Source of the DNA: Squalus acanthias
Lineage: Eukaryota
Reading direction: 5' to 3'
Assembly: GCA_030390025.1 (NCBI GenBank)
Contig: CM059427.1
Span: 187,116,001-187,180,000 of the forward strand
DNA: 64,000 bases
Shown here: in pieces, positions 7,413-60,987 of the stretch
Numbering within the stretch: the first letter of the stretch is position 1
Layout of the letters: each line of letters opens with the position of its first letter
The notes under the pieces: generated by a model
The model's input: only the letters and a program-made list of their open reading frames with translations
Databases searched by the model: none
What the model was told of the DNA's origin: nothing
Position numbers and translations under genes: made by a program

Positions 7413-7682
7413 TTGAGTCAAGTCCACAGAGGCCTTTGGTGGGCAGTGACGTTACACTCAGCTGTACCATCTCCAAACTCTCAGATACAGTCAGTCTTCA
7501 TTGGAAACAGAGAGACTCATCTCAGCAGAACAGGAGGAACACTGATCAGATCCGACTAAATAACACATTCTATCTGATAGTCAAACATGTTGCAGTAGAG
7601 GATAAGGAGTTGTACGCGTGTGAAGTGCAGGAAAATGGATCCATTATTCTCACAGGAAAAGCAGATTTTTATGTGGATCAAT
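7413..7682 (+). CDS. IgSF receptor exon A: C2/I-type Ig domain
   Basis: Acceptor tgtttttcacAG (7411-12), donor GTAAGT (7683), 270 nt, phase 1-1. Reads VESSPQRPLVGSDVTLSC...LHW...EDKELYAC...FYVDQ, with B-strand Cys, C-strand Trp and F-strand YxC. Confidence 0.9.
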
Positions 7683-8626
7683 GTAAGTGCAGTTACCTCA
7701 CAGTAGATATTAAAGAGTTACTGATATAAAACTGTTACATATAAAGTGGAATCATACATGTCAACCATCAGCACGTCATGCTTACAGTCATGCGGTCTGC
7801 ACAGAGCGGGATTAAGCGGAGTGGACTTGAACAGAGTGCTTTGGTCGGGAATTTGGAAAGAGTGGGAATTCGGAGAAGAGAGGGAAGGAGTTGTTGCTTT
7901 TCGCCTACAGTACTTGTAGTGCTTTGTGTTGCAGGTAGATATTTAATTTCAGTATCCTTAACTTAATCTAGATCAATTAAGTAGTCAGGAAACGACACTG
8001 TAAACTAAGTTACCCAATTACAAATTTAAAAAATGTAATTAAATAAATCAAGGTCATATAGGGATGGCAGTGCAGGCAATGTGCCAGCAACTGCAGCATG
8101 TGGGAGTTTGTGGAGAGCATTGTGATCCGGGACAACCATGTTTGCAGTAAGTGCCTGAACCTTGAGGAACTTCAGCTCAGAGTTGTTGAGCTGGAGACTG
8201 AGGTGCGGACATTGCGGGGCATCAGGGATGGGGAGAGTTACCTGGACACTTTGATTCAGGAGGCTGTCACACCCCTTAGGTTAGGTAGTGGTACAGGTCT
8301 GGTTAGTGGTCAGGGACAGGAGGGTGTGACTGCAACTCAGGCAGGTAAGGGGACCCCAGGTGCAGTGCTGGAGGAGCCTCAGCCTTTGCCCTTGTCCAAC
8401 AGGTATGAGGTTCTTGCTGCCAGTGTGGATGAGGGAAAAGCCTGTAGGATGTATGAGCAGGCTAACCATGGCACTATGGTGCAGAAGGCCATTCAAGTGG
8501 GGGGTGGTGAAAGGGAATGTAGTTGTGGTAATGGACAGTATAGTCAGGGGGATAGATACTGTTCTCTGCGGCTGTGACCAAGAGTTCCGAAGGTTGTGTT
8601 ACCTGCCTGGTGCCAGGGTTAAAGAC

Positions 8627-11600
8627 CTGAGACCGGAAGGAGCGGACCTGGAGGAAGCACAGCGAGAGTGGCAGCAACTCAACAGAGGCAGTTTTTGAAA
8701 AAGTGACGTCAGAGTAAAAAACGTGACATCGGCACAAGGGAAGGAGCTGATTGGTGAGTAGCTGGTGACTGTTTTTATTTAAGTTTTAAGTTTATTTCTG
8801 CTAAGTTAGTTAATAGCCTATTAAATAAAGGGAAAAAGCTGATTGGTGAGTTGCTGGGGAGTGCTTTTTGTTAAGTTTTAAGTTTATTTCTGCTGGGTTA
8901 GTTCTTAGTCTATTAAATGGAGGCATGGCAGGGCAGCTCAGTCCCGTGGAGCGCACATCCTGTGCCATGTCAGAATTCCTGGACGCTTCGCTCAGCCTTG
9001 ATGACCACATGTGCGGGAAGTATCGGCAGCTACAGTAACTCGAGCTCCGGGTTTCGGAGCTTGTGCGGCGGCTGGAGTCACTGAGAGTTACGTGAAATAG
9101 CACGTTTCGGGAGGTGGTCACCAAGCAGCTTAACAGTATGCAGGCAGGGAGGGAATGGGTGACCGCCAGACAGAAGAGGAGGACCAGGCAGGTAGTGCAG
9201 GAGTCCCTGGAGTGCATCACGCTCTTCAACCAGTATTCTGTTCTGAGTACTGGTGACGACGATGGTTCCTCTGGAGAGTGCAGCCAGAATCAAGTCCACG
9301 GCACCACAGGTGGCTCAGCTGCACAGGGCGGGGGAAGAAAAAGAGTGGAAGAGTAATAGTGGTAGGGAATTCGATAGTTAGGGGAGCAGACAGGTGTTTC
9401 TGCGGCCGTAGTCGTGACTCCAGGATGGTATGTTGCCTCCCTGGTGCCAGGGTCAAGGATAGCACTGAGTGGATGCAGGACACTCTGAGGGGGGAGGGTG
9501 AACAGCCAGAGGTCGTTGTCCATATCAGTACCAACAACATAGGCAGAAAGAGGGATGAGGTCCTGCAGGCAGAGTTTAGGGAGCTAGCAGAGAGATTAAA
9601 AAGCAGGACCTCAAAGGTAGTAATCTCCAGATTACTCCCGGTGACACATGCTAGTGAGTACAGGAATAGGAGGATAGAACAGGTGACTGCGTGGCTGGAG
9701 AGAATGTGCAGGAGGGAGGGCTTTAGATTCTTGAGGCATTGGGACCGTTTCTGGGACCTGTACAAGCTGGTCGGGTTACACCTCAACAGAGCTGGGACCA
9801 ATATTCTCGTGAGGAGGTTTGTTAGTTGGGGAGGATTTAAACTAACTTGGCAGGGGGATGGGCATCAGCATATAGGAGTAGAAAAGAGGAATTAAGTGCA
9901 TAAAGGAGTGAGTGTATTGGATAGTACTAGAGAAGATAGTACTAGAGGCGGTAATAGTACCATATTAGATAGGAGCAGACTAAGAAAGACTACGAAAAAT
10001 TCAAAAATGGGTTTAGAATGCATGTATGTAAATGCACAAAGTGTGGTGAATAAGGTTGGTGAGCTATAAGCACAATTAGCTGTGTAGCAATATGATGTTG
10101 TGGCAATAACAGAAACGTGGCTTAAAAATGGTAAGGACTGGGCACTTAATATTCAAGGGTACAAGATGTTCAGATAAGATAGGGAAGGAAAAAAGGGAGT
10201 TGGGGTGGCAGTGCTGATTAAGGAAGATATTGTAGTGTTCGAAAGGGAGGATGTTCTTGAGGGGACAAAGACAGAATTCATTTGGTTAGAGTTGAGGAGC
10301 AAAAAGGGTATGATCACGGTATTGGGGGTATTCTATAGGCCTCCAAATAGTGAGAGGGAGGTAGAGGAGCAAATCTGCAGGGAAATCGCAGAGATAGGCA
10401 AGAGCTATAGAGTGGTGATATTGGGGGACTTTAATTACCCAAATATTGATTGGGATAATGCTAGAGTAAAGGGAAAGGAGGGGGAGGAATTTCTGAAATG
10501 TGTTCAGGAGAATTTCATTGACCAGTATGTTCTTGGCCCAACTAGGAAGGAGGCATTGCTGGATCTGGTGCTGGGGAATGAGGTGGGCCAGGTCGACCAA
10601 GTGTCTGTGGGAGAACAATTGGGTACGAGTGATCATCGTATCATAAGATTTAGATTAGCAATGGAGAGGAGAACGGAACAATCTAGAGTGGAACTTCTAA
10701 ACTGGAATAGGGCTAACTTCAATGGGATGCGAAAGGATCTAGCCAGGGTAAAATGGAACCAAAGACTGGCAGGAAAAGCTGTAACGGAACAATGGGTGAT
10801 TTTTAAGGAGGGGATGTTCCAAGTACAGGCTAGGTACATTCGAACAAGAGGGAAGGGTAAGGGAACCAAAGCAAGGGCTCCTTGGATGACGAGGGAGATA
10901 GAGAAGATGATGAAACAAAAAAAGAGGATGTATGATGAATGTCAGGTGAATTCTTCAAGGGAGAACTCGACCAAATACAATAAGTTGAGAGGGGATGTGA
11001 AGATGAAAGTAAGATTGGCAAAGAGAGAATATGAGAGTAGAATGGCGGTTAACATAAAAGGGAACCCAAAAATCTTCTACCAGCATGTAAACAGTAAGCG
11101 GGTAGTAAGAGCTGGGGTGGGGCCTATTGGAGACAAAGAAGGTGATATATGCTTAGAGGCACAGGGCAAGGCTAGAATACTCAATGAGTACTTTGCATCG
11201 GTGTTTACTAAGGAGATGGAAGCTCACAAAACATCGGTAGAAGTGGAAAAGGTAGAAGTAATGGAAGGGGTGAAAATTAATAGACCGGACGTACTAGAAA
11301 GGCTGGGTATGCTTAGAGTGGACAAGTTGCCTGGTCCAGATGGCTTGCACCCCAAATTGCTAAGGGAATTGGTGGAGGAGATAGCAGAAGGGCTTGCCAT
11401 CATTTTCCAATCTTCCCTAGATGCATGGGAGGTGCCTGAGGATTGGAAAGTGGCAAATGTGACACTATTGTTCAAGAAAGGGTGTAAGGACAATCCTAGT
11501 AACTACAGTTTAACATCAATGGTGGGTAAAGTTTTAGAAACAATAATCAAGGAAAAAATTAACGGGCATTTGGAAAGGTTTAAGCTAATTAAGGAGAGCC

Positions 11601-13778
11601 AACATGGGTTTGTAAAAGCAAGATCGTGTTTGACTAATCTAATTGAATTTTTTGATGAAGTAACAGAGAGGACTGATGAAGGGAATGCAATGGGTCTTGT
11701 CTACATGGATTTTCGGAAGGCGTTTGACAAAGTACCACATAGAAGGCTGGTTAACAAAATTGAGGCTCATGGAATAGGTGGGTCAGTGGCAGCTTTGATA
11801 AGGAATTGACTTAAGGACAGAATACAGCGAGTTGTGGTAAATGGCTGTTTTTCAGACTGGAGGATGGTAGGCAGTGGTGTTCCCCAAGGGTCAGTGCTGG
11901 GGCCACTGTATTTTTTATATATATATAAATGACCTGGATATTGAAATACAGATTAGAATTTCTAAATTTGCCGATGACACCAAACTTGGGGATGTGGCAA
12001 ACAGTGATGATGATATCAATCGACTGCAACAAGGCATAGAAAGGCTAGCAGAATGGGCTGATGGAATTTAATACAGAGAAGTGTGAGGTGATGCATTTTG
12101 GCAAGAGGAACAGGGAAAGGCAACATACACTTAATGGCACAGTTTTAAAGAGTGTGCAGGGACAGAGGGACCTGGGAGTTAATGTGCATAGGTCCCTGAA
12201 GGTGGCAGGACATATTGAGAGTGAGGTTAACAAAGCATATGGGATCTTGGGCTTCATAAATAGAGGTATTGAGTACAAAAGTAGAGAAGTTATGCTGAAC
12301 CTTTATAAAGCACTAGTTAGGCCACAACTGGAATATTGCGTCCAGTTCTGGTCACCAAACTTTAGGAAGATGTGAAGGTCCCTGAGAGGGTGCAGGGGAG
12401 ATTTACCAGAATGGTTCTGGGCATGGGGATCTTAGCTACAAGGACAGGTGGAGAAGCTGAATTTGTTTTCATTGGAGCAAAGGAGGTTGAGGGGTGATTT
12501 GATAGAGGTGTACAAGATTATGATGGGTTTGGATAGGCTAGACGGAGAAAGGCTTTTCCCACTAGTTGATGGTACAAGGACTAGGGGACACAGATTTAAG
12601 GTTTGGCCAAGAGATACAGGGGGGTTATGAGGAAAAACTTTTTTAAACAGCGAGTGGTGATGACCTGGAATTCGCTGCTGGCGGAAGTGGTGGAAGCTTA
12701 ATCTTTTCAAGGGGAGTTTGGATAGGCATTTGAGGGAAATAAACTTGCAGGGCTACGGGGATAGAGCGGGGGAATGGGACTGACTGCATTGCTCTACAGA
12801 GAACTGGCTCAGACTCGATGGGCCGAATGGCCTCCTTATGTGCCATTATGACTCTATGGGGGAAAAATTCAGTTGGTTTGTGCCTCCCGTTAGCGCCTTA
12901 AGAGGGCGCTAATGGAGTGTAAAGCAACTAGCGCCCGTGGGCCGGCGATGTTTGCGCCGCTCACGAAATTAACTAGACATTTTGCGGCGGCGCTAAACAC
13001 TACCGCCACGATCTCCTGCGCCGGCAGATCGTGACGTCAGTCGAGTGTGCAACGCCCCGGTAGTGCCCCGGACCGGATATTGAGTGGCGCCCCTGCCTTA
13101 CTGCCTGCCGCTAGCAATGACAGGTTGAGGGGAGCGTTTTGCAGTCAGGAAGGGACTGGGGGAGCGCTATTTAAAGGCAACCGCTTCGTGCCTTTTTTTG
13201 TTGGTGACATTTTTGCACCACGCATTCTGAGAGAGAGAGAGAGAGACTTCTGGAGAGATTCAACGCTGTGTGAAGGATTTTTGGGTACTGAACAGAACTT
13301 TGCAGGTTCATTTTGATTTGCCCTTCCTTGTATCGATCTAGAAGAGACTGTGGGGGCTGCACTCTGAGCTCTTTCCTGGGACTCTCCATTGTTCTTTCCA
13401 GCAGATTTGATGTACAGGTCTCTGCAGGCTGAGATTCAAGGCTGCAATGAGCAGGATGTGGATGGAGAGCAAGATCAACCCTCCCCTTTAAGAACTGGCT
13501 GGCGCCATTGTGTCTGTGTTCCATTGCTGACTGACATCACATGAGCTTCGCCAGCTCTGAGGTAGCTCTGAGGTAGCGCCTCGCTCCTCGGCCTTTGCGC
13601 CTTAAGACAGGTGTGTAGCACCTGATTTTTCTCTCTAATCACCTCCAGGGGTGATAAAAGCCAAGTTTGCAGTCGGAGGCGATAATTAGCGTCAGGCGCT
13701 AAACTTTGCGCCCGGCCGATAATTGCTCCCCAAACGGGGTGATACTGAATTTTTCCCCCTATGACTCTATGACTGTAT
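8627..13778 (+). mobile_element. Full-length CR1 LINE inserted in ORF1 of the previous CR1
   Basis: The 5' UTR has a ~92-bp tandem duplication (8743-8922). Esterase ORF1 (9278-9895), APE-RT ORF2 (10205-11809 and onward, with stops), (TATGACTC)n tail. Flanked by GAC on both sides. Confidence 0.92.
12858..13759. mobile_element. Non-autonomous Harbinger-type element (902 bp)
   Basis: Perfect 16-bp TIR GGGGGAAAAATTCAGT and 3-bp TSD TAT. Inserted in the CR1 microsatellite tail. Confidence 0.92.
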
Positions 13779-16428: not shown

Positions 16429-19400
16429 GTAACAAGGGTATACAGTAATCAAGGGGGACTTTAATCTACATATAGACTGAGCAAACCAAATTTACAGTAA
16501 TAGTGTGGAGGACGAATTAATGGAATGTATGAAAGATAGTTTTCTAGATCAGTATGTTGAAGAACAACAAGGGAACAGGCTACTTTAGATCTTGTATTGT
16601 GCAACGAGAAAGGGTTAATTAATAACCTTCCAGTAAAGGAGCCTTTAGGGAAGAGTGACCATAATATGATAGAATTTTATATTCAGTTTGAAAGTGAATC
16701 AGTTAAATCTGAAACTAGGGTCTTAATTCTAAACAAAGCAAATTACGTTGGTATGAGGGGCGATTTGGTTAAGGTAGATTGGGAAACTACATTAAAAGGT
16801 ATGACAGTGGATGAGCAATGGCTAGCATTTAAAGAATTAATACATAATTTACAACAAATATACATTTGTTTCAGGCACAAAAAACCCACAGGAAAAGTGG
16901 TCCAACCGTGGATAACAAGAGAAGTTAAAGATAGATCAAAGGAAAAGGTTTATAACACTGCCAAAAAGAATAGTAAGCCTGAGGATTGGGAGGATTTTAG
17001 AATTCAGCAAAGGAGGACCAAGAAATTGATAATGAAAGGGAGAATAGAATATGAGAGTAAACTAGCGAGAGACATAAAAACAGACTGTAAAAGCTTCTAT
17101 TTGTATGTAAAAAGGAAAAGATTAGCAAAAGTAAATCTGGGTCCTTACAGGCTGAGACAGGAGAAATTATAATGGGGAATAAGGAAATGGCTGGGAAATT
17201 AAATAAATACTTTGTGTCTGTCTTCACAGAAGAAGACACAAAAAACTACCCGGAAATAGTGGACAACCAAGGGTCTAGCGAGAATGAGGAACTGAAAGAT
17301 ATTAGTATTAGTAAAAAGTAGTACTAGAGAAATTAATGGGACTGAAAGCCAATAAATCCCCTGGACCTGATGGCCTACATACTAGCGTTTTGAAAGAGTT
17401 GACTGTAGAGATAGTGGATGCATTGGTTGTCATTTTCCAAAATTCCATAGATTCTAGAATGGTTCTCGTGGATTGCAAGGTAGCAAATGTAACCCCACTA
17501 TTTAAGAAAGAAGGAGAGAGAAAACAGGGAACTGCAGATCAGTTAGCCTGATATCAGGAGCAGGGAAAATGCAAGAATCTATTATTAAGGACGTGGTAAC
17601 AGGGCACTTAGAAAATACGAATAAGATTGGGCAGAGTCACCGCGGATTTATGAAAGGGAAATCCTGTTTGACAAATCTGTTAAAGTTTGTTGAGGTAACT
17701 AGCAGAATATATAATGGAGAACCAGTGGATGTGGTGTATTTGGATTTTCAGAAGGCATTCGATAAGATGCCACACAAGAGGTTATTAAACAAAATTAGTG
17801 CTCATGGAATTGAGGGTAATATACTAGCATGGATTGAGGATTGGTTAACGGACAGAAAACAGAGAGTAGGAATAAACGAGTTATTTTTGGGTTGGCAGGC
17901 TGTAACTAGTGGAGTACCGCAACGATCAGTGCTTGGGCCTCAGCTATTCACAATCTACATTAATGATTTGGATGAGGGGACGAATGTATTATATCCAAGT
18001 TTGCTGATAATACAAAGCTGGGTGGGACTGTAAGTTGTGAGGAGGATGCAAAGAGGCTTCAAGGGGATATAGACAGACTAATTGTGTGGGCAAGAACATT
18101 CAAATGGAATATCATATGGAGAAATGAAGTTATCCATTTTGGTAGGAAAAATAGAAAAGCAGGGTATTTTTTAAATGGTGAGAGATTGGGAAATGTTGGT
18201 GTTCAGAGGGACCTTGTACACGAATCACTGAATGTTAACATGCAGGTACAGCAAGCAATGAGGACATCAAATGGTATGTTGGCCTTTATTACAAGAGGAT
18301 ATGAGTATAAGAGTAATGACGTCTTACTGCAATTATATAGGGCCCTGGTGAGACCACACTTGGAGTATTGTGCACAGTTTTGGTCTCCTTACCTAAGGAA
18401 GGATATACTTGCCATAGAGGGAGTGCAAAAAAGGTTCACCAGACTGATTCCTGGGATGGGGGGGATTGTCGTATGAGGACAGATTGAGTAGACTAAGCCT
18501 ATATTCTCTAGAGTTTAGAAGAATGAGAGGTGATCTCAGTGAAACATACAACATTCTTATAGGGCTTGACAGGGTAGATGCAGGGAGGATATTTCCCCTG
18601 GCTGGGGAGTCTAGAACCAGGAGTCACAGTCTCAGAATAAGGGGTTGGCCATTTAGGACTGAGATGAGGAGAAACTTCTTCACTCAGAGGGTGATGAATC
18701 TTTGGAATTCTCTACCCCAGAGGGATGTGGAGGCTCAGTTGTTAAGTATATTCAAGACAGAGATCAATAGATTTTCGGATATTAAGGTAATCAAGGGATA
18801 TGTGATAGTTCAGGAAAGTGGAGGTGAGGTAGAAGATCTCATTGAATGGTGGAGCAGGCTCGAAGGGCCAAATGTCCTACTCCTGCTCCTATTTCTTATG
18901 TTCTTAGGTTCTTATGTCAGCATGTGGGTCCCCGGTGCATATATCAACATTGAACAAAAAACTGTCCTCTCGCCCCTCAATGCCACTTCTAACCGAGTTC
19001 TGCTGCTATTTGAAGTGATTCCAGCTGCTGCATACTCAAGGCTTCAAATAAGCATTCAGCTGGGAGCAGGACTGAGGAAAGAGGAAAGGGCAGGGAAGCA
19101 ATGGCCATGAACTGAGAGGGAAGGATGGAAATGATGGCAATGTAGAGGAGAGATGGTGAGCAGAGGGAAATGACAGAAGCTGGGAGTGGGGCTTTGGGGG
19201 AGGAAGAGGGGAAAAGCTGAGAGTGGAACTTTGGAGTGGAAGATAAGAATTTGCATTTGTGTGAAGTGTCGAAAAAAGACTCTGTTATTAAAATAGCATC
19301 AAAACTATTGATGTGGATCAGGGTAAGGCCAGAACGACCTTACAGTAGAAATTAAATAGTTACTGAAATAACACTGTTACACACAAAGTACAGGGAGCAC

Positions 19401-20070: not shown

Positions 20071-21467
20071 ATTTTTCTTGTCTAGAATTGTCAAAGTAAA
20101 TGAAGCTGTTCAACATCAGAAGGTAGAAAATCTGAAATGATGCATTTTTTTTATAAGTGGTACCAGAGTATAAAACAAAAACAGCGAATGCTTTCAGTAA
20201 CATAGCATCTTGAAGAAAGAAAAAAATACACTTCACTGAGGAAGAATGATGTGGATGTCAGTATTAGTGAGAAAGTTAAGAGAGGTGATTGAAAGCTTGG
20301 TCAAAGAGTGTGTGTGAAGACACAGCAAGAGGTGAAGGGGTTTAGGGAGGGAGTTCCAGAGGTTTGGGTAGAGGGGAGATCGGAGGCGTTGGGGGTGGGG
20401 GGATTTAGATCGAAGACCGGAGGGGAGATCGGAAGGATCGTGGGGAGATCGGAGACCGCAGCCAAGCAGTTCGGAGAAGGGAGTGAGGGATCGGAAAGAC
20501 CGGGGTGGTGGAGGTGAGATCAGAAGAGTTGGGTCGGTGGGAGATCATGGCTCAGGGGTGTGACCAATCAGGGGTTGATGGTGTGGGGAGCAGGTAAGCT
20601 GGCTCCAGCTGGTAATTGGAAAGGCACTTACCTGCAGGAACCAGCAGCCCACGCCTCCCTCTAGGTGTCGGGCAGCTTGAGGCCTGGGAATCCTGGCCGG
20701 CCAGTGTTAAATTTAAATGGAGATTAAATCTGAGCGAAGCAGCCTCGTTATAATATTTAAATGACCAACTCACCTCCTGGGAGTGGGTTGGTCGTCCTGT
20801 CCCCCGTCCCACCATCGTTAAAACCGGAAGTGGGCGGGGTGGGGTAGGGTTTGTGATTTTTAACATTTTAACAACCCACCCAACCCAAACCCACCCATTT
20901 TAGGGGTTTAAAATGACCACCTTTGAATTTGTGCAATAGTACAACAACATTGCGAGATGTAAAACGTGCTGCCAATTCACTATCGTTCATTTTACACATC
21001 GCACAAAGCCAAATTACCCGCATGTTTCTGGAAGAAAGCATCATGATTGCTCCCTGGACAATAAGTAAAGGAATCCCAACTTTCCCATTTTTTCAGCTGC
21101 CAAGTTGTATTGCAGCAACAATTAAAACAACTCTGAGTGAGTCTGGCTGAGAAAATTTGAAGGAAGGAAGAATGATAATAAGATAATAATGAACAGGTGT
21201 AAACTCTGTGCAAAATGTTAAATACAGAAGAAGACAGATGTTCACTGAAAAAACCTGCTAGTTGCCACCAACTCAAATAACCACGTCCTTGCTTTATGGA
21301 TTATGTTAAAGTGGGACAGGCCCATGGAGCAGACGTGTGCGCATCTCACATGGGTGAGGTGAGCACTGGAGGAAGAACTTTGCCAAAATTCATGAAATTC
21401 TGCATGGGATCTTCTTTGAAAAATTATTCCAGGTAAATGAGGATTGCACTTGCCTGAAGGAAACCAT

Positions 21468-22229
21468 GGGCCAGAAATTCGGATTTCCGGCTTCCTGCGG
21501 GTGCAAGCATCGTGCGCGTACTTGACTACCGCGCCTGCCGTTGTGCTTTGGGCCCACGAGGACTTCGGGTCCTGGGCCTCCTCCAGCTGCCGGCGCGCAG
21601 TGCTTGTGTATCCCAGGGGCGCAGTTAGTTCGAAGCGTCGCCTGGGATCACGTGGGCCATGGAGAGCCAATCCTAGCAGGGCATTTTCATTCATAGATTT
21701 GACAGGAAGACCTGTCAAATCTATGAATAGAGATCGGCCCCAAAACCACACTTAAACTTCAAATACATTTTTTTTAAATCACATTTTTAAAATAACTATA
21801 AGTTACATAAATTAACTACTTTAAATAAAAATTAAAATTTTTGAAAAAATTAATTATACATTTTAACGGTGCTAAAAATAAACTTACCTTTCTTTAAAGT
21901 ATCTAAAAAAGATAAGCCTGTTGAAAAAATGTTTAAATTGTAATTAATTAATCACTTACCTTGTTAAAAATAGGCCTTGCGCCTCCTTTTTAAAAGCGCA
22001 GCTTCTTCATACTTACCTTCCCGGAGAAACCTGAAAAAAAACCTGAAGTTCGCTGCGTGCGCGCAGCCTCTCCCGCGCACGTGTTCGACTTCTGAACCCC
22101 TCCCTTCAGGGGAACGGAAGTTCCGGTTTCCCGCGCATGCGCAGTGCATGCAGGAAACTGACACTTCAGGTTGCCTTACGGGTGAGTACACAACACGTAC
22201 TCACCCGACAACAGCCGAATTTCTGACCC
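21468..22229. mobile_element. Harbinger-type MITE, family 1
   Basis: TIR GGGCCAGAAATTCGG (14/15 match), TSD CAT. GC-rich arms and an AT-rich core shared with the copies at 41846 and 49371. Confidence 0.9.
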
Positions 22230-22618
22230 CATATTTAAAACATTGCAAAATTGCTCTGTGCAAAATGTAGTTCTATGTAGCCTGCAGCCGCCACCAGCAG
22301 GACTCCAGGTTACTGGCCCAGCCTCAGACTATTGGGCCTGTGATGTCATGGTGTCGCCCAGGGCACAAAAATCTCATCATACTAAAAATCAAAAATGTTT
22401 CATTCAAAAAATTCTGTTTCCTTATGAATATCAAATTAACCCAAATTGTACATTTTTTAAACAGTTTATAAATCTGACAAAAACTTGATCAAATAAAATT
22501 ATGATAATCAAAATGCAAAATAGGCTTATATGATTGTGGCCAATAATTATTCTCTATTTTCTCTGTAACTCAACAACCGTAAAAATCTAACACGTCGTTC
22601 TCTGTCTCTCTATTACAG

Positions 22619-22972
22619 ATTTATATGGGAAGAGTTACACACTTTATCGATCAGGCACAGATCACAGTGAACTCGACCTGATTTGCTATGGTTATTATAA
22701 TAATTATGTTTACTCTTACTCTCATGCTGCATGGACCTGGAGGTCACGTCAGCTTCAAAATCAGAAGAAAGAAATAGCATCTGCTTCAATATCTCAGCTC
22801 ATCAATGTAGACAGGACCTACTTTGGGAGTCGACTGGTGCCCACAGAGACAAAGTTTAATGGCAAGAACTTCAGTGTGAGGATTGTCCCTGTGCTGTTTG
22901 AAGATGCAGGAGTTTACACAAGTTCTCTGGGATCATATAACATGGTGACCATTAAACTAATCACAGTTAAAG
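22619..22972 (+). CDS. IgSF receptor exon B: V-type Ig domain (F-strand Cys replaced by Ser)
   Basis: Acceptor tctgtctctctattacAG, donor GTAGGA, 354 nt, phase 1-1, open and in frame with exon A. YLYGKSYTLYRSGTDHSELDLICYGYYNNYVYSYSHAAWTW...FGSRL...NFSVRIVPVLFEDAGVYTSSLG...IKLITVK. Only its 3' half appears in the ORF track. Confidence 0.9.
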
Positions 22973-23050
22973 GTAGGAGACAGAATGTTGTCATTGTTTC
23001 CAATGATCAAGTTATTGTTTGAAATCTAAATGATTTTCTTGTTTACACAG

Positions 23051-23320
23051 TCACAGCTGAACCATCTGATGCAGTGACTGAGGGAGACACCGTTACCCTG
23101 ACCTGCTCTGTCTCTGATGTCACTGAATCAATGAGACTTGTTTGGATCAGTAGCGATGGCAAAACTGTTGAGGAGAAAACTTTTAAGGACCAAAACCAGG
23201 AAGAGGATTTGTTACGGCTGATTATTCAGAAAGCTGATAGAGACAGAAGGAACTGGACATGTGTTTTGTTTCATCAAAACACGCCCAGCATTTTAATTCC
23301 ATATTATCTGAAGGTTAACA
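23051..23320 (+). CDS. IgSF receptor exon C: membrane-proximal C2 Ig domain with WxC motif
   Basis: Follows a 78-nt intron. Acceptor ttttcttgtttacacAG, donor GTAAGT (23321), 270 nt, phase 1-1. VTAEPSDAVTEGDTVTLTC...LVW...DRDRRNWTC...YLKVN. Confidence 0.92.
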
Positions 23321-23657
23321 GTAAGTGTCTCAGGTTTTTCACTTTTAGCCTCCATTGAAAGTTCTTGTCACTCACTGCTCTTTTATTATGATAACCTCTT
23401 CCTTTTCAGATCCTATTGCACTCCACATTACTCAGAGTTCAATCATCGGTGTTCACATATAAACAATTTAACATCAAAAATCAAACTATACAATCAAAGC
23501 AATAGAGAGGAGCTGAAGAGGAGAACATTTTTTTTACATCTTTGGGTCCATTACACTCCTGTAAAGAGTCTTTTAAATGTTAAATTCCCTCCTGCCCACT
23601 GCAATAAGACTAATTGCCAGCAACAGAATGTTTTTTCTTGCATCCAGTGTTGCTATG

Positions 23658-28164: not shown

Positions 28165-28166
28165 TA

Positions 28167-38494: not shown

Positions 38495-38602
38495 ATGTTT
38501 ACACTTTTAAACATACCAATATTGTAATTTTCGGGAGTCTGGCTCTTCTCCTCATCATTATCCTGGCAGTGGTGCTGTGTCTAGGAAAGTGCACGGTTGC
38601 AG
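38495..38602 (+). CDS. IgSF receptor exon D: transmembrane segment
   Basis: Acceptor tattcttctgacAG, donor GTAAGA, 108 nt, phase 1-1. NVYTFKHTN-IVIFGSLALLLIIILAVVLCL-GKCTVA: about 21 hydrophobic residues with no charged residue, plus juxtamembrane cysteines. Confidence 0.88.
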
Positions 38603-47427: not shown

Positions 47428-49370
47428 GTAAGTAGATGGATCATATTATGAGGCTCTATCAGTGGAGGTATTGTTAACATAGAAACTCATAGAATCATAG
47501 AATCATAGAAAGTTACAGCACGGAAGGAGGCCATTTCGGCCCATCGTGTCCGTGCCGGCCAACAAAGAGCTATCCAGCCTAATCCCACTTCCCAGCTCTT
47601 GGTCCGTAGCCCTGCAGGTTAGAGCATCCCAAGTGCACATCCAAGTACTTTTTAAATGTGGTTAGGGTTTCTGCCTCTACCATCCTTTCAGACAATGAGT
47701 TCCAGGCCCCCACAACCCTCTGGGTGAAGAAACTTCCCCTCAAATCCCCTCTAAACCTTCCACCAATTACTTTAAATCTGTGCCTCCTGGTTTTTGACCC
47801 CTCTGCTAAGGGAAATAGGTCCTTTCTAGCCACATTACCTCGGCCCCTCATAATTTTATACACCTCAATAAGGTCTCCCCTCAGCCTCCTCTGTTCCAAG
47901 GAAAACAAACCCAGCCTATCCAGTCTTTCCTCATAGCTAAGATTCTCTACTCCTGGCAACATCCTTGTAAATCTCCTCTGTACCCACTCTCGTGCAATCA
48001 CATCTTTCCTGTAATGTGGTGACCAGAACTGCACGCAGTACTCTAGCTGAGGCCCAACTAGTGTTTTATACAGTTGAAGCATAACCTCCCTGCTCTTGTA
48101 TTCTATGCCACGGCTAATAAAGGCAAGCATTCCGTATGCCTTCTTAACCACCTTATCTACCTGGCCTGCTACTTTCAGGGATCTGTGGACATGCACTCAA
48201 GGCCCCTTTGTTCCTCTACACTACTCAGTGTTCTACCATTTAATGTGTATTCCCTTTCCTTGTTAGCCCTCCCCAAATGCATTACCTCACACTTCTCTGG
48301 ATTGAATTCCATTTGCCACTGTTCTGCCCACCTGACCAATTTATTGATATCTACCTGCAGTCTACAGCTTCCTTCTTCAGTATCAACCACACAGGCGATT
48401 TTAGTATCATCTGCAAACTTCTTAATCATACCCTCTATATTCAAGTCTAGATCATTGATATATACAACAAAAAGCAAGGGACCTAGTACTGAGCCCTGCG
48501 GAACCCCACTGGAAACAGCCTCCAGTCACAAAAACACCCATCAACCATTACTCTCTGCTTCCTGCCTCCGAGCCAGTTTTGAATCCAACTTGACACTTTG
48601 CCCTGGATCCCATGGGCTTTTAACTTCGTGACCAGTCTGCCATGTGGAACCTTATCAAAAGCCTTGCTAAAGTCCAAATACACTACATCAAACGCACTAC
48701 CCTCATCCACCCTCCTTGTTACCGCCTCAAAAAATTCAATCAAGTTTGTCAGACACGACCTTCCCTTAACAAATCCGTGCAGACTATCCTTGATTAATCC
48801 GTGTCTTTCTAAATGAAGATTTATCCTGTCCTTCAGAATTCTTTCCAATAATTTTCCCACCACCGAGGTTAGGCTGACTGGCCTGTAATTACTCAGTCTA
48901 TCCTTTTCTCCCTTTTTAAACAAGGGTACCACATTAGCAGTCCTCCAGTCCTCCGGCACCACACCTGAAGGCAGAGAGGATTGAAAAATGATGTTCAGGG
49001 CCTCTGCTATTTCCTCTTTTACTTCGCTTAACATTTCATCCGGGCCTGGGGATTTATCCACTTTTGAAGCTGCTAAACCCCTTAATACTTCCTCTCTCAC
49101 TATGTTTATTTCATCTAATATTTCACACTCCTCCCCCCTGATAGCAATGTCTGCTTCGCCCCTCTCCTTTGTGAAAACAGACGCAAAGTTTTCATTAAGA
49201 ACCCTACCGGCATCTCCCGCCTCCACACACAGATTACCCTCATGATCTCTAATAGGCCCTACCCTTTCTTTAGTTATCCTCTTACTCTTAATATATTTAT
49301 AAAACATCTTTGGGTTTTCCTTGATTTCACTTGCCAAGAATTTTTCATGCTCACTCTTTGCTTTCCTAAT

Positions 49371-50115
49371 GGCCCAGAAATTAAACACTGAGTGTTCACG
49401 CGGGGGTAAGGCTTCCCCGCGATATCTCACTCCGCGCCTACCTTTTTCCTCCGGGCCCACACGAACTTTAGTTTCAAGGCTGCAGCTGTGCAGTGCTTGC
49501 GTGACCCAGAGACGCAATTAGTTCGTGCGAGCTCTGGGATCACGTGATTCAGTTAGAGCCAATGGCAGCACACCATCTTTCATTCATAGTTTTAACAGCA
49601 AGGGCTGTCAAAGCTATGAATCCTACACACCCCCGAAAGAACAGCTAAACCTCAATTAAATTTAAAAAAAAAGCCATCACTTTAATAAAATAAGTATAGT
49701 TAAATAAATTAACCACTTTAAACAAAAAATTAAATTTTTGAAAAAATTTAAAATCTTTTTAAAAGTTATAAAAATAAACTTACCTTTCTTTAAAGTCTCT
49801 AAAAAAGATAAACCTGTTGAAAAAAATTTAAAATAATACTTAATTAACTACTTACCTTGTTAAAAGAGGGTCTTACGCCTCCTTTCTTTATGTGTAAAAT
49901 CTTCCATGCTTACCTGCACGTTCAAAGCACTAAGTGCACTGCGTGCGCGCAGCCTGTAGCGCGCACGCGGTTCACTTAGGAACCGCCCCCTTTTGAATTC
50001 ACGAAGTGCCGGTTTCCCGCGCATGAGCAGTGCATGCAGGAAACCGACAATTGGAGACCTAAAACGCGAGAGTACACAGTGCGTACTCTCGCGTATTAGG
50101 TCTAATTTTCGGGCC
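49371..50115. mobile_element. Harbinger-type MITE, family 1, inside CR1 A
   Basis: TIR ggcccagaaatta (11/13 match) and TSD AAT. The host CR1 is continuous across it. Confidence 0.9.
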
Positions 50116-50532: not shown

Positions 50533-53500
50533 AAAGTCAGAGAGTCATAGAGTTATACAGCACAGAAAGAGGCCCTTCGGCCCATCGTGTCTGCGCCGGC
50601 CATCAAGCCCTACCTATTCTAAACCCATTTTCCAGCACTTGGTCCGTAGCCTTGTATGCTATGGCGTTTCAAATGCTTATCTAAATGCTTCTTGAATGTT
50701 GTGAGGGTTCCTGCCTCTACCACCCTTTCAGGCAGTGAGTTCCAGATTCCAACCACCCTCTGGGTGAAAAAGCTTTTCCTCAAATCCCCTCTAAGCCTCC
50801 TGCCCCTTCCCTTGAAACTATGCCCCCTGGTTAATGACTCCTATAGTATGGGGAAAAGTTCCTTTCTATCTACTCGATCTATGCCCCTCATAATTTTGTA
50901 CACCTCAATCAGGTCCCCCCTCAGCCTTCTCTGCTCTGAGGAAAACAACCCCAGCCTGTCCAGTCTCTCTTCATAGCTGAAGCGCTCCAGCCCAGTTAAC
51001 ATCCTGGTGAATCTCCTCTGCACCCTCTCCAATGCAATCACAGCCCTTCTATAGCGTGGCGACCAGAACTGCACACAGTATTCCAGCTGTGGCCTAACTA
51101 ACGTTTTGTACAACTCTATCATAACCTCCCTGCTCTTATATTCTATACCTCGGCTAATGAAGGCAAGTATCCCATATGCCTTTTTAACCTCCTTACCTAC
51201 CTGTCCTGCTGCCTTCAGGGATCTATGTACATGCACACCAAGGTCCCTCTGATCCTCTGTCCTTCCTAGGATCCTACCATTCATTGTGTATTCCCTTGCC
51301 GTGTTTGTCCTCCCAAAATGCATCACCTCACACTTTTCAGGTTTAAATTCCATTTGCCACTGTTCTGCCCATCTCGCCAACCCGTCTATATTGTCCTGTA
51401 GCCTGAGGCTTCCCTCCTCGCTATTTACCACTCCACCAATTTTCATGTCATCTGCGAACTTACTGATCATACCTCCTACATTCAAATCTAAATCATTAAT
51501 GTACACTACAAACAGCAAAGGACCCAGCACCGATCCCTGCAGTACACCACTGGATACAGGCTTCCAGTCATAAAAACAACCTTCGACCATCACCCTCTGC
51601 CTCCTGCCACTAAGCCAATTTTGGATCCAATGTGCCAAATTGCCCTGGTTCCCATGGGCTCTTACATTTTGAGCAGTCTCCCATGCGGGACTTTGTGAAA
51701 AGCCTTACTGAAGTCCATGTAGACTACATCAACTGCACTACCCTCATCCACACACCTAGTCACCCCCCCGAAAAATTCAATCAAATTGGTTGGACATGAT
51801 CTCCCCCTGAAAAAGCCATGCTGACTATCCTTGATTAATCCTTGCCTCTCCAAGTGAAGACTAATTCTGTCCCTCAGAATTTTTCCAATAATTTCCCTAC
51901 CACTGATGTTAGGCTCACTGGCCTTTAATTCCCTGGTTAATCCCTACTACCCTTCTTGAATAATGATTCTACGTTAGCTGTCCTCCAGTCCTCTGGCACC
52001 TCCCCTGTGGCCAGAGAGGTTCTGAAAAGTTGTGTCAGAGCCCCTGCAATCTCCTCCCTTGCCTCACACAGCAGCCTGGGATACATCTCATCTGGGCCTG
52101 GGGATTTATCCACATTTAAGCCCGCTAAAACCGCTGGTACCTCCTCCCTCTCAATACTAATTTGTTCAATTATATCACAATCCCCCTGCCTGATTTCTAT
52201 GCCTACATCATCCTTCTCCATAGTGAACACAGATGCAAAATATTCATTTAAATCCTCACCCACATCTTCCAGCTCTACACACAGATTGCCATTTTGGTCC
52301 ATAATGGGCCCTACTCTTTCCCTGGTTATCCTGTTGCCCTTAATATACTTAGAAAACACGTTGGGATTTTCCTTTATTTTGCCCGCCAGTGTTTTTTCAT
52401 GCCCTCTCTTCACTCTCTGAATTTCTTTTTTAAGTACTCCCCTGCTCTTTCCATACTCCTCTAGGGCTTCCACTGTTTTTAGTCCTTTGTATCTGCCAAA
52501 AGCCTCCCTTTTTTTCCTAATCCATTCTTGTATATCCCTTGACATCCAGGGTTCCCTGGGCTTGTTGGTCCCACCCTTGACCTTTACGGAAACATGTTGG
52601 CGTTGTACTCTCTCCATTCCCTTTCTGAAAGACTCCCACTGCTCTGCTGTGGATTTTCCTACAAGTAGCTTATCCCAATACACTTTGACCAGATCCTGCC
52701 TTATCAGATTAAAATCAGCCTTCCCCCTCTTCAGAACCTTTATTTCTGATCCATCTTTGTCCCTTTCCATGACTACCTTAATTCTCACCGAATTATGGTC
52801 ACTGTCACCAAAATGCTCTCCTACTGACACTTCTACCACTTGCCTGGCTACATTCCCTAGAATTAGGTCCAGTACTGCCCCCTCTCTTGTAGGACTTTCT
52901 ACATGCTGGCTCAAAAAGCTCTCCTGGATGCACTTTAAGAATTCCGCACACTCTAAGCCTTTCCCACTCTGACTATCCAGTTAATAGTGGGGAAGTTGAA
53001 ATCCCCTACTATTATTATCCTATTATTTCTACACTTCTCTGAGATTTGCATACATATCTGTTCCTCTATCTCCCCCTGACTGTTTGGGGGCCTATAGTAC
53101 ACTCCCAGCAAAGTGCTTGCCCCCTTTTTGTTTTTATGTTCTACCCATATGGCCTCATTAGAGGAACCTGCTAAGATATCATCCCTCCTTACAGCAGTAA
53201 TTGACTCCTTGATTAATATTGCGACTCCCCTCCTCTTTTACACCCCCCTCTGTCTCGCCTGAAGATTCTATACCCCGGAATATTGAGCTGCCAGTCCTGC
53301 CCCTCCTTCAACCATGTCTCTGTGATAGCAACAATATCATAGTCCTATGTGTTCATCAACACCTTCAATGCATCTGCCTTACCAGCAAGACACCTTGCAT
53401 TAAAATAAATGCCATCCAGCCTTGCCATACTCCCTTGTGCCTTTACATATTTGCTCTGCCTTCCAGGCTGACTTGTTTTTTCCTCTATATTTGGCTGTGC

Positions 53501-56500: not shown

Positions 56501-57162
56501 CCTACGCTTGACTTCACCAATCTTTTTCTCTTCACATATCTATAGAAGCTTTTACAGTCAGTTTTTATGTTACCTGCAAGCTTAGTCTCATATTCTATTT
56601 TCCCCCTCTTAATTAATCCCTTTGTCCTCCTTTGCTAAATCCTAAACTGCTCCCAATCCTCAGATTTGCTGCTTTTTCCGGCCAAATTATATGTCCTCTC
56701 CTTGGATCTTATGCTATCCCTAATTTCCCTTGTTAGCCACGGTTGAGTCACCTTTTTGTTTTATTTTCATGACAAACAGGGATGAACAAATTCTGTAGCT
56801 CATCCATGCGATCTTTAAATGTTTCCCATTGCCTATCCACCATCAACCCTTTAAGTAACTCTCCCCAATCCATCCTAGCCAACTCGCGCCTCATACCATC
56901 GTAGTTTCCTTTATTTAAATTCAGGACCTAAGTCTCTGAATCAACGACTTCATTCTCCATCTTAATGAAAAATTCCATCATGTTATGATTGCTCCTCCCC
57001 AAGGGGCCTCGCACAACAAGATTGCTAATTAAATTTGGTTGACTACTCCCGCTCCCGGACTCTTTCCCAACTCGCAGCACTCCAGTGTCTGGCCTACTCT
57101 GCAGCGCTCCTTTATGGCCGCTCCGCCTTCTCTCAGGTCCCGCTGCCGCTCCCACAGAGGTC
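50533..57162 (-). mobile_element. Full-length CR1 'B' nested in A (50533-54710 + ~57029-57162)
   Basis: 6-bp TSD CGCCTT (50527-32, 57163-68). ORF2 and ORF1 fragments are present. The 5' UTR is split by CR1 C. Confidence 0.85.
54711..57028 (-). mobile_element. 5'-truncated CR1 'C' nested in the 5' UTR of B
   Basis: RT ORFs at 54807-56535. Highly similar to 795-4194. Flanked by TTA. Confidence 0.88.
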
Positions 57163-59024
57163 CGCCTTCTACCTGCCCAGCTTCATTCCCTAAAAATAAG
57201 TCCAGAACCGCCCCCTCCCTATTTGGGTTTGCTACATATCGGCTAAAAATGTTCTCCTGGATGCATTTTAGGAATTCCGCACCCTCTATACGCTTGACTC
57301 TAATTTTATCCCAGTTAATATTGGGGTAGTTGAAATCCCTTACTATTACTGCCCTATAGTTTTTGCACTTCTCAGAAATTTGTCTACTTATTTGCTCTTC
57401 TATCTCCCTCTCACTGTTTGGGGGTCTATAGTACACTCCCAGCAGTGTGATCGCCCCTTTTTTGTTTTTCAATTCGACCCATATGGTCTCGTTTGATGAT
57501 CCCTCCAACATATCATCCCTCCTCACAGCTGTAATAGTTTCTTTAATCAATACTGCGACACCCCCTCCCTTTTTACCTCCCTCTCTATCCCGTCTGAAAA
57601 TCCTGTAACCAGGAATGTTGAGCTGCTTTACAAGCCCTTCTTTCAGCCACGTCTCTGTAACAGCTATAATATCATAGTCCCAAGTATCTACCTGTGCCCT
57701 CAGCTCATCTGCCTTGTTCGCTATACTCCTTGCATTGAAGTATATACCATTTAGTACAGGCAAACCTCCTTATTGACTACTATCTAGCCCTTGATTCCTC
57801 TGTCCTTCCAATTTACTTTCTACATTTTTGTTTTCCAATTCCGGCTTTTCTTCCCTCCCTACCGACTCTATTCTTAGGTTCCCATCCCCCTGCCAAGCTA
57901 GTTTAAACCCTCCCCAACAGCACTAGCAAACCCTCCCGCGAGGATATTGGTCCTGTTCCCGTTGAGGTGCAACCCATCTGGCTTGTAGAAGTCCCACCTC
58001 CCCCAGAAATGGTTCCAACTCCTCAGGAATCTAAAGCCCTCCCTCCTATACCATCTCTCCAGCCACGCATTCATCTGCTCTATCCTCCTATTTCTGTACT
58101 CACTAGCACGTGGCACTGGTAGTAATCCAGAGATTACTACCTTTGAAGTCCTGCTTTTTAACCTCTTTCCCAGCTCCCTAAACTCTGCCTGCAGGACCTC
58201 ATCCCTCTTTCTACCTATGTCGTTGGTACCGATATGGACCATGACCTCTAGGTGTTCACCCTCCCCCCTCAGAATGCCCTGCAGCCGTTCAGTGACATCC
58301 TTGACCCTGGAACCAGGGAGGCAACATACCATCTTGGAGTCATGTCTGCGGCCGCAGAAACGCCTGTCTGCACCCCTCACTATTGAATCCCCTATCACTA
58401 TTGCTCTCCCTCTCCTCTTCCCCCCGCCCCCCGCCTGTGCAGCTGAGCCTTCCATGGTGCTGTGGACTTGGCTCTGGCTGCACTCCCCAGAGGAACCATC
58501 TCCCTCACCAGTACTCAGCACCAAATACTGGTTGGTGAGCAAGATGGGCTCAGGGGACTCCTGCACTACCTGCCTGGTCCTCCTCTTCTGTCTGGCGGTC
58601 ACCCATTCCCTCTTTGCCTGCACACTCTTAAGCTGCGGGGTGACCACCTCCCGAAACGTGCTATCCACGTGGCTCACAGCCTCTCGGATGCACAGCAGTG
58701 ACTGCAGCCGCCGCTCAATCACCGTAACCCGGTGCTCGAGCTGCTGTAGCTGGCGACACTTCCCGCACGTGGTCGTCCAGACCATGGGAGGTGTCCAGGA
58801 CTTCCCACATGGCACAGGATGTGCATTCCCCGGGTGTGAGCTGCCCTGCCATACCTCTAATTAACAGACTATTTTCTAACCGAGCTGGAATAAACTTAAA
58901 ACTTTAAGAAAGCCAAGTATAAACACTTACCAGATACTCACCAATCAGCTCCTTCACCTTGTGCCGACGTCACTTTTGATTTCTGACGTCACTCTTTGAA
59001 AATTCTGCCGGTGCTGAGTTGGTA

Positions 59025-59307
59025 CCGCCACCACCACCTCGCCGCTCCTCCCAGGTCCGCACTGCCGCCACCGCCACCTCGCCGCTCCTCCCAGGTCCGC
59101 ACTGCCGCCACCGCCACCTCGCCGCTCCTCCCAGGTCCGCACTGCCGCCACCGCCACCTTGCCGCTCCTCCCAGGTCCGCACTGCCGCCACCGCCACCTC
59201 GCCGCTCCTCCCAGGTCCACACTGCCGCCACCACAGCCTCGCCGCTCCTCCCAGGTCCACACTGCCACCGCCACCTCGCCGCTCCTCCCAGGTCCGCACT
59301 GCCGCCG
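59025..59307. repeat. 40-bp tandem repeat x7 at the CR1 A 5' end
   Basis: Unit CCGCCACCTCGCCGCTCCTCCCAGGTCCGCACTGCCGCCA. Confidence 0.97.
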
Positions 59308-59562
59308 CTGCTGCTGCTGCTGATCGATTGTTGGATTTCATTGAGTTAAAATGTTGCTTCTACTTTAATACTTTGTCTTGCGCGCTCTTCAGAGATGCGA
59401 TGATAAATTCAGAGATAGTTTAACAATCTTTAGTAAAATAGATCTTTGTGATGCTGGTCCACTATAAAAGGCTTCAAGCACAATACAGCAGCCCATTTAT
59501 TCAGTCATTTTAGTCATTTATAGATCACAAATTTGCAATAGGATTGGCTGTTTAGAAATAAT

Positions 59563-60240: not shown

Positions 60241-60534
60241 ATAATGAATCACGGAAACAAAGTAAACAAGTAGCAACAAGTGCGGATGTCAGGATCAGGC
60301 TTGGCTTTGAGACTCCACATGATCATATAGCTTCCCAACACCTCATATCCAGACTCACAGATGAAGAATCAATATTTGAGTTATTTAATGGAGGACTGTC
60401 AGTACTTGTGGAACCAGAACCGAGTGAGAGTCAGGAGAGGTGGGAGAAAAGAGAATAAAGAGATTAAAATTGGAAAAGATATAATCTGCACCAATAGATC
60501 TACGGTGTTAATGCTCCAATTTATGAGATAACTT

Positions 60535-60912
60535 GGCAGCACAGTCACTTCGGAGGCAGAAAGTTGTGGGTTCAAGCCCCATTACAGACTTTGAGCATGT
60601 ACTCTAGACTGACACTTCAGGGGGAGGACTGCATTTTTGAAACAGCTGTCTTTCAGCAGAGAACTGTTTAGGTGAATGTTAAAGCTATCATCGTATCATT
60701 TGAAGGAGAGCAGGAAGTTGTGCTGACAAAAATTCTTCGCGCAACCAAAACGACCACAAGAGATTAACTGGTCTTTATCTCATTTCCTGCTTTTGGGACC
60801 TTGAATTGTGTTTGTTTACCTGACAACAATACTTCCACTTTAAAAGTAATTGATTACTTGCTTTGGGATATGTTCAGGCACAATATTTATATACAGATGC
60901 AAATCTTTATTT
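60535..60912 (+). mobile_element. Old Deu-domain SINE abutting exon G
   Basis: gggttcaagcccc B-box, gctgtctttcag core and tail tatacagatgcaaatcttt. Colinear with 41285-41712. Confidence 0.7.
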
Positions 60913-60930
60913 CCTTCTTATTCTCTGCAG

Positions 60931-60987
60931 ACACAGAAAGAGAAGATATTCATTACGGATCTATCTCATTTCAGAGAAAAGCACCAG
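60931..60987 (+). CDS. IgSF receptor exon G: cytoplasmic exon with ITIM IHYGSI
   Basis: Strong acceptor ttccttcttattctctgcAG, phase 1. DTEREDIHYGSISFQRKAP. It ends either at the weak donor G|GTAGTG (60988) or reads through GSEN to TAA at 60999-61001. Confidence 0.8.

Follow-up and report, generated by a model that had tools for sequence, protein, structure and literature searches.

A candidate inhibitory receptor gene of Squalus acanthias from an unnamed multigene family of cartilaginous fish with a CD4/LAG-3-like predicted ectodomain

Excerpts of PMC10768021 describe CD4 and LAG-3 as receptors with four immunoglobulin (Ig) domains in the order V-C2-V-C2, derived from a duplicated V-C2 unit and marked by an unusual WxC on strand F in D2 as well as in D4. 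According to the same excerpts, the cytoplasmic tail carries Cx(C/H) in CD4 and (F/Y)xxL(D/E) in LAG-3, the rest of the LAG-3 tail being encoded by one exon, and there is usually one gene for each of the two receptors. Here we compare with them a gene on the forward strand of a 64,000-nucleotide stretch of Squalus acanthias DNA (assembly GCA_030390025.1, contig CM059427.1, positions 187,116,001 to 187,180,000), hereafter called the window and numbered from its first letter. Its seven exons probably encode the domains D2, D3 and D4, the membrane span and the proximal tail of a type I Ig-superfamily receptor that damps cell activation. Judged by sequence, the gene belongs to an unnamed multigene family of sharks, rays, skates and chimaera, and its sister genes in other species invite comparison with a second group of described systems. 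KIR, LILR, CEACAM and the teleost NITR or LITR are Ig-type families in which inhibitory and activating receptors are paired.

Exon structure and transcription of the locus

All seven exons (Table 1) are preceded by a pyrimidine-rich tract and AG, are followed by GT, are of phase 1-1 and have a length divisible by three. The donor sequences are gtaagt (three times), gtaaga, gtagga, gtaaca and gtagtg. Added up, the exons give 412 codons (90 + 118 + 90 + 36 + 33 + 26 + 19), all of them open. The six codons split by introns were read by hand as TAT, GTC, AAT, GGT, GGA and GAC, none of which is a stop, and the residues that they encode agree with those at the same joints in an alignment of relatives. 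The introns measure, in order, 14,936, 78, 15,174, 6,824, 1,824 and 13,503 nt, in a window that is free of N and has 45% G+C. An earlier note on this DNA had proposed seven AG/GT-bounded phase 1-1 exons with a stop-free frame of 412 codons, spread over 53 kb of transposons. Both the frame and the setting are borne out, the former by the reading of the DNA and its split codons, the latter by open reading frames (ORFs) of long interspersed nuclear element (LINE) type in the introns. The sequence features on which that proposal had leaned, namely AEYATV, IHYGSI, an uncharged transmembrane segment and WxC in E3, are likewise all present in the window.

Table 1. Exons of the gene model and other features of the window
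Feature	Position	Strand	Length	Content	Support or remarks
Exon E1	7413-7682	+	270 nt, 90 codons	D2-type Ig domain, C2-like, cysteines in strands B and F, YAC	Pfam Ig_3 5.2e-07; 150/169 relatives match, best 86.5% identity
Exon E2	22619-22972	+	354 nt, 118 codons	V-like domain, family D3; first cysteine and tryptophan present, strand-F cysteine replaced by serine	Pfam V-set 0.0039, below the Pfam cutoff; 157/169 relatives match
Exon E3	23051-23320	+	270 nt, 90 codons	C2 domain, family D4, NWTC on strand F	Pfam ig 2.7e-08; 155/169 relatives match, best 90.8% identity
Exon E4	38495-38602	+	108 nt, 36 codons	Stalk and uncharged membrane span	69/169 relatives match, up to 82% identity
Exon C1	45427-45525	+	99 nt, 33 codons	Tail; tyrosine of the family's Y-S-N is histidine	tblastn 1.0e-08; 51/169 relatives match
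Exon C2	47350-47427	+	78 nt, 26 codons	Tail with AEYATV from 47388	blastp, 43/169 relatives match
Exon C3	60931-60987	+	57 nt, 19 codons	Tail with IHYGSI from 60948	GT donor follows, frame open; 55/169 relatives match
Relic of a second E1-type exon	19215-19400 (approximate)	+		In the E1-E2 intron, outside the transcript model	tblastn match 19233-19289
LINE-type ORFs	10205-11809 (+); 48483-49517, 50841-51638, 57029-57763, 57898-58815 (-)	+ and -		Endonuclease, reverse transcriptase, GDSL-esterase-like first ORF	
Tandem array	59025-59306		7.1 copies of a 40-bp unit	G+C-rich unit	93% matches

Domain and homology searches were run exon by exon. The span encoded by E4 comprises 22 hydrophobic residues without D, E, K or R and is the sole convincing uncharged span that was found. 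Exon C1 was recognised through its homology to relatives, a scan of splice signals alone having given no outstanding candidate. When the relatives were used as tblastn queries, they matched E1, E2-E3, E4, C1 and C3, and all other matches were to transposons. Chance ORFs, considered as an explanation of the exons, are ruled out by homology with E-values down to 6.1e-156.

The completeness of the model is unproven, since it is open at both ends and the window provides neither a start codon nor a stop codon for it, which weighs against reading it as a whole gene. The earlier note had recommended a look upstream for leader and D1 exons. With pieces of the relatives as tblastn queries (E<=5), neither these nor the last tail exon were found in the 64-kb window, the best matches for the missing exons being LINE ORFs or the read-through of C3; a lysine-bearing membrane exon was likewise not found at E<=5. 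Because introns at this locus reach 15 kb, the absent leader, D1 and terminal exons may sit outside the window. No neighbouring gene lies within it either. If the donor of C3 is left unused, the frame continues for four codons (60988-61002, + strand) and then meets a stop. The two-domain relatives P0136 (Mobula hypostoma) and P0141 (Hemitrygon akajei) also end a few residues past the point that corresponds to the end of C3, and for these two reasons a short-tailed read-through isoform is possible. The closest AATAAA or ATTAAA downstream of C3 lies at 61792.

Contigs of four runs (X1-X4), drawn from small sets that stem from two organisms and whose label as RNA is a guess, were aligned to window positions 21000-25000. 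The joint 22972|23051 (GT..AG, 78 nt skipped) was seen as a splice joint in X4, and in all four runs contigs of E3 start with 11-15 letters identical to window 22956-22970, that is, with the E2-E3 junction. Contig depth, which cannot show expression level, was 60.6-6866.8 over the exons (bins at 22608-23277), against 0-4.74 for the two intron bins upstream of them (22340-22607) and 2.21-34.1 for the bin next downstream, and contig ends fall at 22972 and 23320. In X2, pieces with an exact match to the window cover 22870-22972 (record 12, 0 differences, including the serine codon considered below) and 23049-23149. Of the six predicted junctions, which the earlier note had recommended checking against RNA reads, E2-E3 is the one seen in these contigs; the other five rest on the conservation of residues across them in relatives.

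The guessed label apart, two further points weigh against taking these contigs as transcripts of this very copy. Most E3 contigs differ from the window at 23154, 23172, 23193, 23196 and 23290, and exact matches cover only the two stretches given above. Because of these five differences and the shortness of the exact matches, a near-identical paralogue or allele may be the source of some or all of the reads. Many contigs of X1-X4 lie on E2 and E3 (22619-23320) at 90-99% identity, and indel variants occur in the loop that encodes a tyrosine/asparagine-rich stretch near 22689-22724. Since the differences among the contigs are consistent and are joined by these indel variants, it follows that close paralogues or alleles are expressed, with a V-like loop that varies from one to another.

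An unnamed multigene family with two kinds of ending

Exon E2 searched against 1.84 billion representative sequences gave 37 matches at E<=0.001, 24 at <=1e-10 and 9 at <=1e-30, with the best at 6.1e-156. A family search recovered 118 proteins at E<=0.001 among 6704 candidates, and a family profile run against a large protein set recovered 164 at E<=0.01 (names being considered for the best 120 of the 164). In an exon-wise blastp comparison with 169 relatives, each of the seven exons matched between 43 and 157 of them. The relatives come from at least 13 shark species, at least nine batoid species and the chimaera Callorhinchus, and on these matches no chondrichthyan lineage sampled is without the family. 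Latimeria, bichirs, sturgeons, paddlefish, eels and a bonefish yielded more distant relatives, eels and the bonefish being the only teleosts among the matches listed.

Several species carry many genes of this kind. Distinct LOC numbers amount to at least nine in Mobula hypostoma, at least eight in Pristis pectinata, at least seven in Hypanus sabinus and at least six in Leucoraja erinacea; in the first three species all of the family's LOCs lie on one chromosome-sized record, and in Leucoraja five of the six do. The earlier note had suspected an expanded, uncharacterised receptor family of cartilaginous fish, and the 118 and 164 proteins, together with seven to nine LOCs on one chromosome in each of three batoids, support the suspicion.

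The proteins are already public as database predictions, and the family is unnamed. Almost all of the 118 are called "uncharacterized" or "hypothetical", the exceptions being two obscurin-like proteins (one nurse shark GenBank entry), two VCAM1-like proteins, one CD276 homolog and one CD22-like protein, the last being the weakest match; one further relative is named CEACAM5-like. These names are automatic and mutually inconsistent. No protein named CD4, LAG-3, DICP or G6F occurs among the matches listed. A search of the open literature found no account of the family or of its accessions and LOC numbers, although subscription papers and the supplements of PMC10768021 could hold one.

The closest relatives are P0054 of Pristiophorus japonicus (86.5% identity in E1, 90.8% in E3 and 84% in C2) and P0050 of Heptranchias perlo (78.6% in E2). 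Among the 169 relatives none exceeds 91% identity in any exon, and the window's own product is not among them. The predicted LOC genes of sharks and rays (for example P0054 and, in Heptranchias perlo, P0050/P0040) agree with the window gene exon for exon, in the same order and with the same joints, and differ from the window copy in that the latter has a serine in D3 and a histidine in C1.

Full-length relatives consist of a leader, D1 (V-like, without cysteines), D2 (of E1 type, with Y-x-C on strand F), D3 (of E2 type, V) and D4 (of E3 type, with WxC), followed by one of two endings. The first is an uncharged span with four tail exons, which carry Y-S-N, xEYATV, IHYxx(I/V/L) and a terminal IYA(Q/D), respectively. 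The second is a lysine-bearing span of GYLLVKL type with a short tail. Near-identical ectodomains are joined to either ending in the alignment of relatives. Among 159 relatives, the GYLLVKL-type span was counted in 18, the IHY-type motif in 55 and the terminal IYA(Q/D) in 37, and in none did tyrosine motifs accompany a charged span. There are also forms with two, three, seven and eight domains, as well as natural isoforms that start directly at D2 (P0004).

The window holds D2, D3, D4, the uncharged span and three tail exons, and by these sequence features its gene is of the inhibitory kind within the family. The full-length relatives thereby bear out the assignment of the exons, made in the earlier note, to D2-D3-D4, transmembrane segment and tail of a four-domain receptor. 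The multi-exon tail with tyrosine motifs that it had described extends to a fourth exon in the relatives, and the relatives with a charged transmembrane segment that it had predicted were found in the form of the 18 lysine-span proteins.

Exons E1 and E2 are nearer to the first domain set of relatives with seven or eight domains (P0054, P0066), and E3 and the membrane exon are nearer to the last set. Because the two halves match different sets, the window gene may go back to a longer form whose internal domains were lost. The bony-fish relatives P0030, P0031 and P0027 (bichir, sturgeon and eel) have the four-domain layout and keep WxC in D4, and the tails of bony-fish relatives end in Y-E-N or Y-D-N instead of the shark IHY and IYA(Q/D).

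Resemblance to CD4 and LAG-3, and competing explanations

Profile-profile alignment with hhalign of D1D2 against D3D4 of the family gave a probability of 97.8% over 156 columns, with 94.3% for D1-D3 and 95.6% for D2-D4. The cross pairs D1-D2, D1-D4 and D3-D4 reached 0.8-3.3%, and D2-D3 reached 51.6%. On these alignments, the family ectodomain reads as a tandem repeat of a V-C2 unit. Structures were modelled for two relatives, the four-domain P0040 and the two-domain P0136; they are predictions and do not represent the window's own protein, which tempers all that is drawn from them. The AF2 model of P0040 has predicted local distance difference test (pLDDT) scores of 80-96 in most 10-residue blocks of its ectodomain, and strands 123-138 and 329-344 run unbroken across domain joints. 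Each V-C2 unit is thus predicted to form a rigid rod with one strand crossing from V into C2.

The solved structures nearest to these models are largely those of CD4 and LAG-3. In a Foldseek search of P0040 against 350,542 PDB chains, LAG-3 took ranks 1-2 (1.4e-16) and CD4 ranks 4, 5, 7, 8 and 9. With VIA, four-domain CD4 chains took ranks 1-4 for P0040 (Z 17.6-15.9, 315-331 residues aligned), the next family standing at 14.2, and D3D4 of rat CD4 gave Z 13.5 at a root-mean-square deviation (rmsd) of 2.5 over 169 of 177 residues. In a search of P0136 against 48,161 chains, independent of Foldseek, the top match was rat CD4 D3D4 (Z 14.7, rmsd 2.8, 171 of 177 residues, 20% identity). A 44-sequence profile run against PDB sequences found LAG-3 at 2.3e-12 to 8.3e-12 and CD4 at 2.6e-11 (ranks 2 and 4-6 of 368), and its alignment sets the family WxC in register with the WxC of LAG-3 D2 and with that of LAG-3 D4. 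Searches with single exons against solved structures returned generic Ig matches; a match between E1 and the part of CD4 D1 around strand F (~1e-4) is too short to count for much.

The family shares with CD4 and LAG-3 a four-domain V-C2-V-C2 ectodomain from a duplicated unit (seen in full-length relatives, the window holding D2-D4), predicted rods with a continuous V-C2 strand, and WxC in strand F of the C2 domain next to the membrane. By Foldseek, VIA and sequence profile, CD4 and LAG-3 come out best or near-best among solved structures, by small margins. On strand F of D4, 83 of the 87 motif matches have tryptophan; the window reads NWTC. The differences are equally plain. Identity to the family is 12-20%. 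There is no WxC in D2: of 77 strand-F motifs, 69 have tyrosine, seven phenylalanine and one histidine, none has tryptophan, and E1 of the window has YAC. The domain without cysteines is D1 and not D3. The tail is spread over four or more exons, has IHY..., xEYATV and terminal IYA(Q/D) motifs and carries no CD4 or LAG-3 motif; in the tail exons of the window, neither Cx(C/H) nor (F/Y)xxL(D/E) was found. Each genome has many genes, including lysine-span forms and forms with two, three, seven and eight domains. The absence of the D3 cysteine in the window copy was considered as a family trait akin to D3 of CD4 and rejected, because D3 of the relatives keeps the normal pair (158 of 163), so that the loss is specific to this copy.

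An orthologue of CD4 or LAG-3 is rejected by the tail motifs, the number of genes and D2. At most, therefore, the relation is one of kinship, and the family is not a member of CD4/LAG-3 in the sense of PMC10768021. In the earlier note, the ectodomain had been called CD4-like and the gene grouped with CD4, LAG-3 and DICP: the likeness finds support in the predicted structures and the sequence profile, and the grouping was overstated. Its claim that WxC alternates on the C2 domains applies to D4 alone. We regard common ancestry with CD4 and LAG-3 as an evenly balanced question. A more specific proposal, which we consider doubtful, is that the family forms a third branch of the CD4/LAG-3 lineage, older than the split between cartilaginous and bony fish, which would have kept the V-C2 rod and WxC, expanded into clusters of paired receptors and later been lost in tetrapods and most teleosts.

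Several results weigh against such kinship and would suit an ordinary Ig-superfamily lineage with CEACAM, B7, CD22 or SLAM-type receptors as its closer kin, in which the likeness to CD4/LAG-3 would be that of a generic V-C2 pair. CEA comes first in the 44-sequence profile search when ranked by summed domains, and a 13-sequence profile ranks PD-L1 (8.1e-07), NCAM and CEA above LAG-3 (2.2e-4); the CD4-specific Pfam models match none of 13 members. The Foldseek E-values are closely spaced, and chains of single-chain variable fragments (scFv) lead for the two-domain model. In the P0136 search, a single domain of NITR11 reaches Z 14.1, within 1 Z of CD4; single V-domain matches bring NITR11 and NTB-A within about 1-1.5 Z of CD4, and for the D1 domain by itself NTB-A, CD48 and NITR11 stand within about 2 Z. 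To these may be added the tyrosine in D2, the automatic names listed above (obscurin-like, VCAM1-like, CD276 homolog, CEACAM5-like and CD22-like, with CD4 and LAG-3 absent among the matches listed), and the combination of a D1 without a cysteine pair and a multi-exon tail with several tyrosine motifs, as is known from CEACAM1 and SLAM-type receptors. Set against this, alignment of the two-domain rod at rmsd 2.5-2.8 over 169-171 residues was obtained with CD4 chains only, and alignment of the whole ectodomain with four-domain CD4 only, at the Z scores given above. The score of CEA is a sum of five weak stretches, whereas LAG-3 aligns in two single stretches that are in register and include WxC. 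We accordingly hold a generic origin to be possible, if somewhat short of probable. Quite unlikely, in our judgement, is a third reading, in which the family is the cartilaginous-fish counterpart of G6F or teleost G6F-like. G6F-like is reportedly a four-Ig-domain molecule that resembles CD4/LAG-3 and has Y-x-N motifs in its tail. Relatives carry Y-S-N in tail exon C1 (17 of 19), and Y-E-N and Y-D-N close the tails of the bichir and sturgeon relatives; the G6F-like paper is cited by PMC10768021, in its reference list. However, no protein named G6F appears among the matches listed, and the window copy itself is without the C1 tyrosine. A bony-fish profile search returned 13 proteins without the shark family and is uninformative on G6F.

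A different kind of alternative concerns the locus and not the ancestry of its family, namely that it is a transcribed pseudogene or a fragment left by duplication in a receptor cluster, and not a working receptor. Two replacements in the window copy weigh against an intact receptor: the strand-F cysteine of D3 is serine (AGT, 22921-22923), where cysteine occurs in 158 of 163 family motifs, and the tyrosine of the C1 Y-S-N is histidine, where tyrosine occurs in 17 of 19. The failure to find leader, D1 and terminal exon in 64 kb would fit decay as well, as would the relic of half an E1-type exon within the first intron, the LINE ORFs that fill the introns and the five differences between the window and most E3 contigs. 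On the other hand, all 412 codons are open and the seven pairs of acceptor and donor are intact, and with introns of up to 15 kb the absent exons may be outside the window. In other species, too, five D3 domains of the family are without the strand-F cysteine, exact-match spliced contigs in X2 include the serine codon, and isoforms that start at D2 occur naturally in relatives, as in P0004. We therefore consider a decaying or truncated copy unlikely and retain, as the more probable reading, that the locus is part of a working inhibitory receptor gene.

The relic in the E1-E2 intron has lost the 5' half of the exon; what is left is the 3' half, a gtaagg donor and some 70-100 nt of intron that still match, and it aligns with 7560-7790 at a mean column identity of 78% in a DNA alignment. 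A half exon of E1 type in this position suggests a duplication of an exon or domain that later decayed. Several of the LINE copies in the introns are antisense to the gene. The tandem array at 59025-59306 is open in several frames on both strands and gives rise to spurious long ORFs.

Proposed mechanism and significance

The inhibitory reading draws on the tail motifs. The broad pattern of the immunoreceptor tyrosine-based inhibitory motif (ITIM) is (S/I/V/L)xYxx(I/V/L), and IHYGSI fits it. Excerpts of PMC10768021 give a narrower form, (I/V/L)xYxx(L/V), which IHYGSI misses by its isoleucine at +3 and AEYATV by its alanine at -2, a point against this reading; alanine at -2 is the commonest state of the C2 motif in the family (15 of 26). 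In the mechanism that we propose, the ectodomain would bind a ligand, upon which Src-type kinases would phosphorylate the tail tyrosines, those of IHYGSI and AEYATV and a further one in the last exon outside the window. Phosphatases with SH2 domains could then dock on the tail and switch off neighbouring activating receptors.

A lysine-bearing span usually signals that a receptor pairs with an activating adaptor, and the relatives with such a span would signal through an adaptor chain. Because sister genes in other species swap the tail for a lysine-bearing span, we infer that the family works as paired inhibitory and activating receptors. With KIR, LILR, CEACAM, NITR and LITR it has in common multigene clusters, near-identical ectodomains on two types of span and tail, phase 1 domain exons and small tail exons. 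It differs from them in having a repeated V-C2 rod, where they have either several C2 domains in a row or one V domain, and no membership in any of them was seen at the level of sequence. By its kind we class the gene with the paired immunoreceptors of Ig type, its CD4-shaped ectodomain being unusual.

Cartilaginous fish are the oldest living vertebrates whose immunity is based on antibodies and T cells, and few paired inhibitory/activating families are described from them. The gene points to a large family of this type, from chimaera to rays, which stands in the databases only as "uncharacterized protein", and whose members are candidates for regulatory receptors of natural killer (NK)-like or myeloid cells in sharks. 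For annotation, the locus illustrates that such genes are recoverable from exons scattered over tens of kilobases of LINE elements. The family ectodomain is the nearest likeness to CD4 and LAG-3 beyond those two, and because it comes so near, it could help to explain the origin of the co-receptor fold for class II molecules of the major histocompatibility complex (MHC). If the doubtful third-branch proposal were true, the CD4/LAG-3 fold would have begun as, or given rise to, a diversified receptor system of innate type, and sharks would carry many CD4-shaped receptors whose ligands could include MHC-like molecules.

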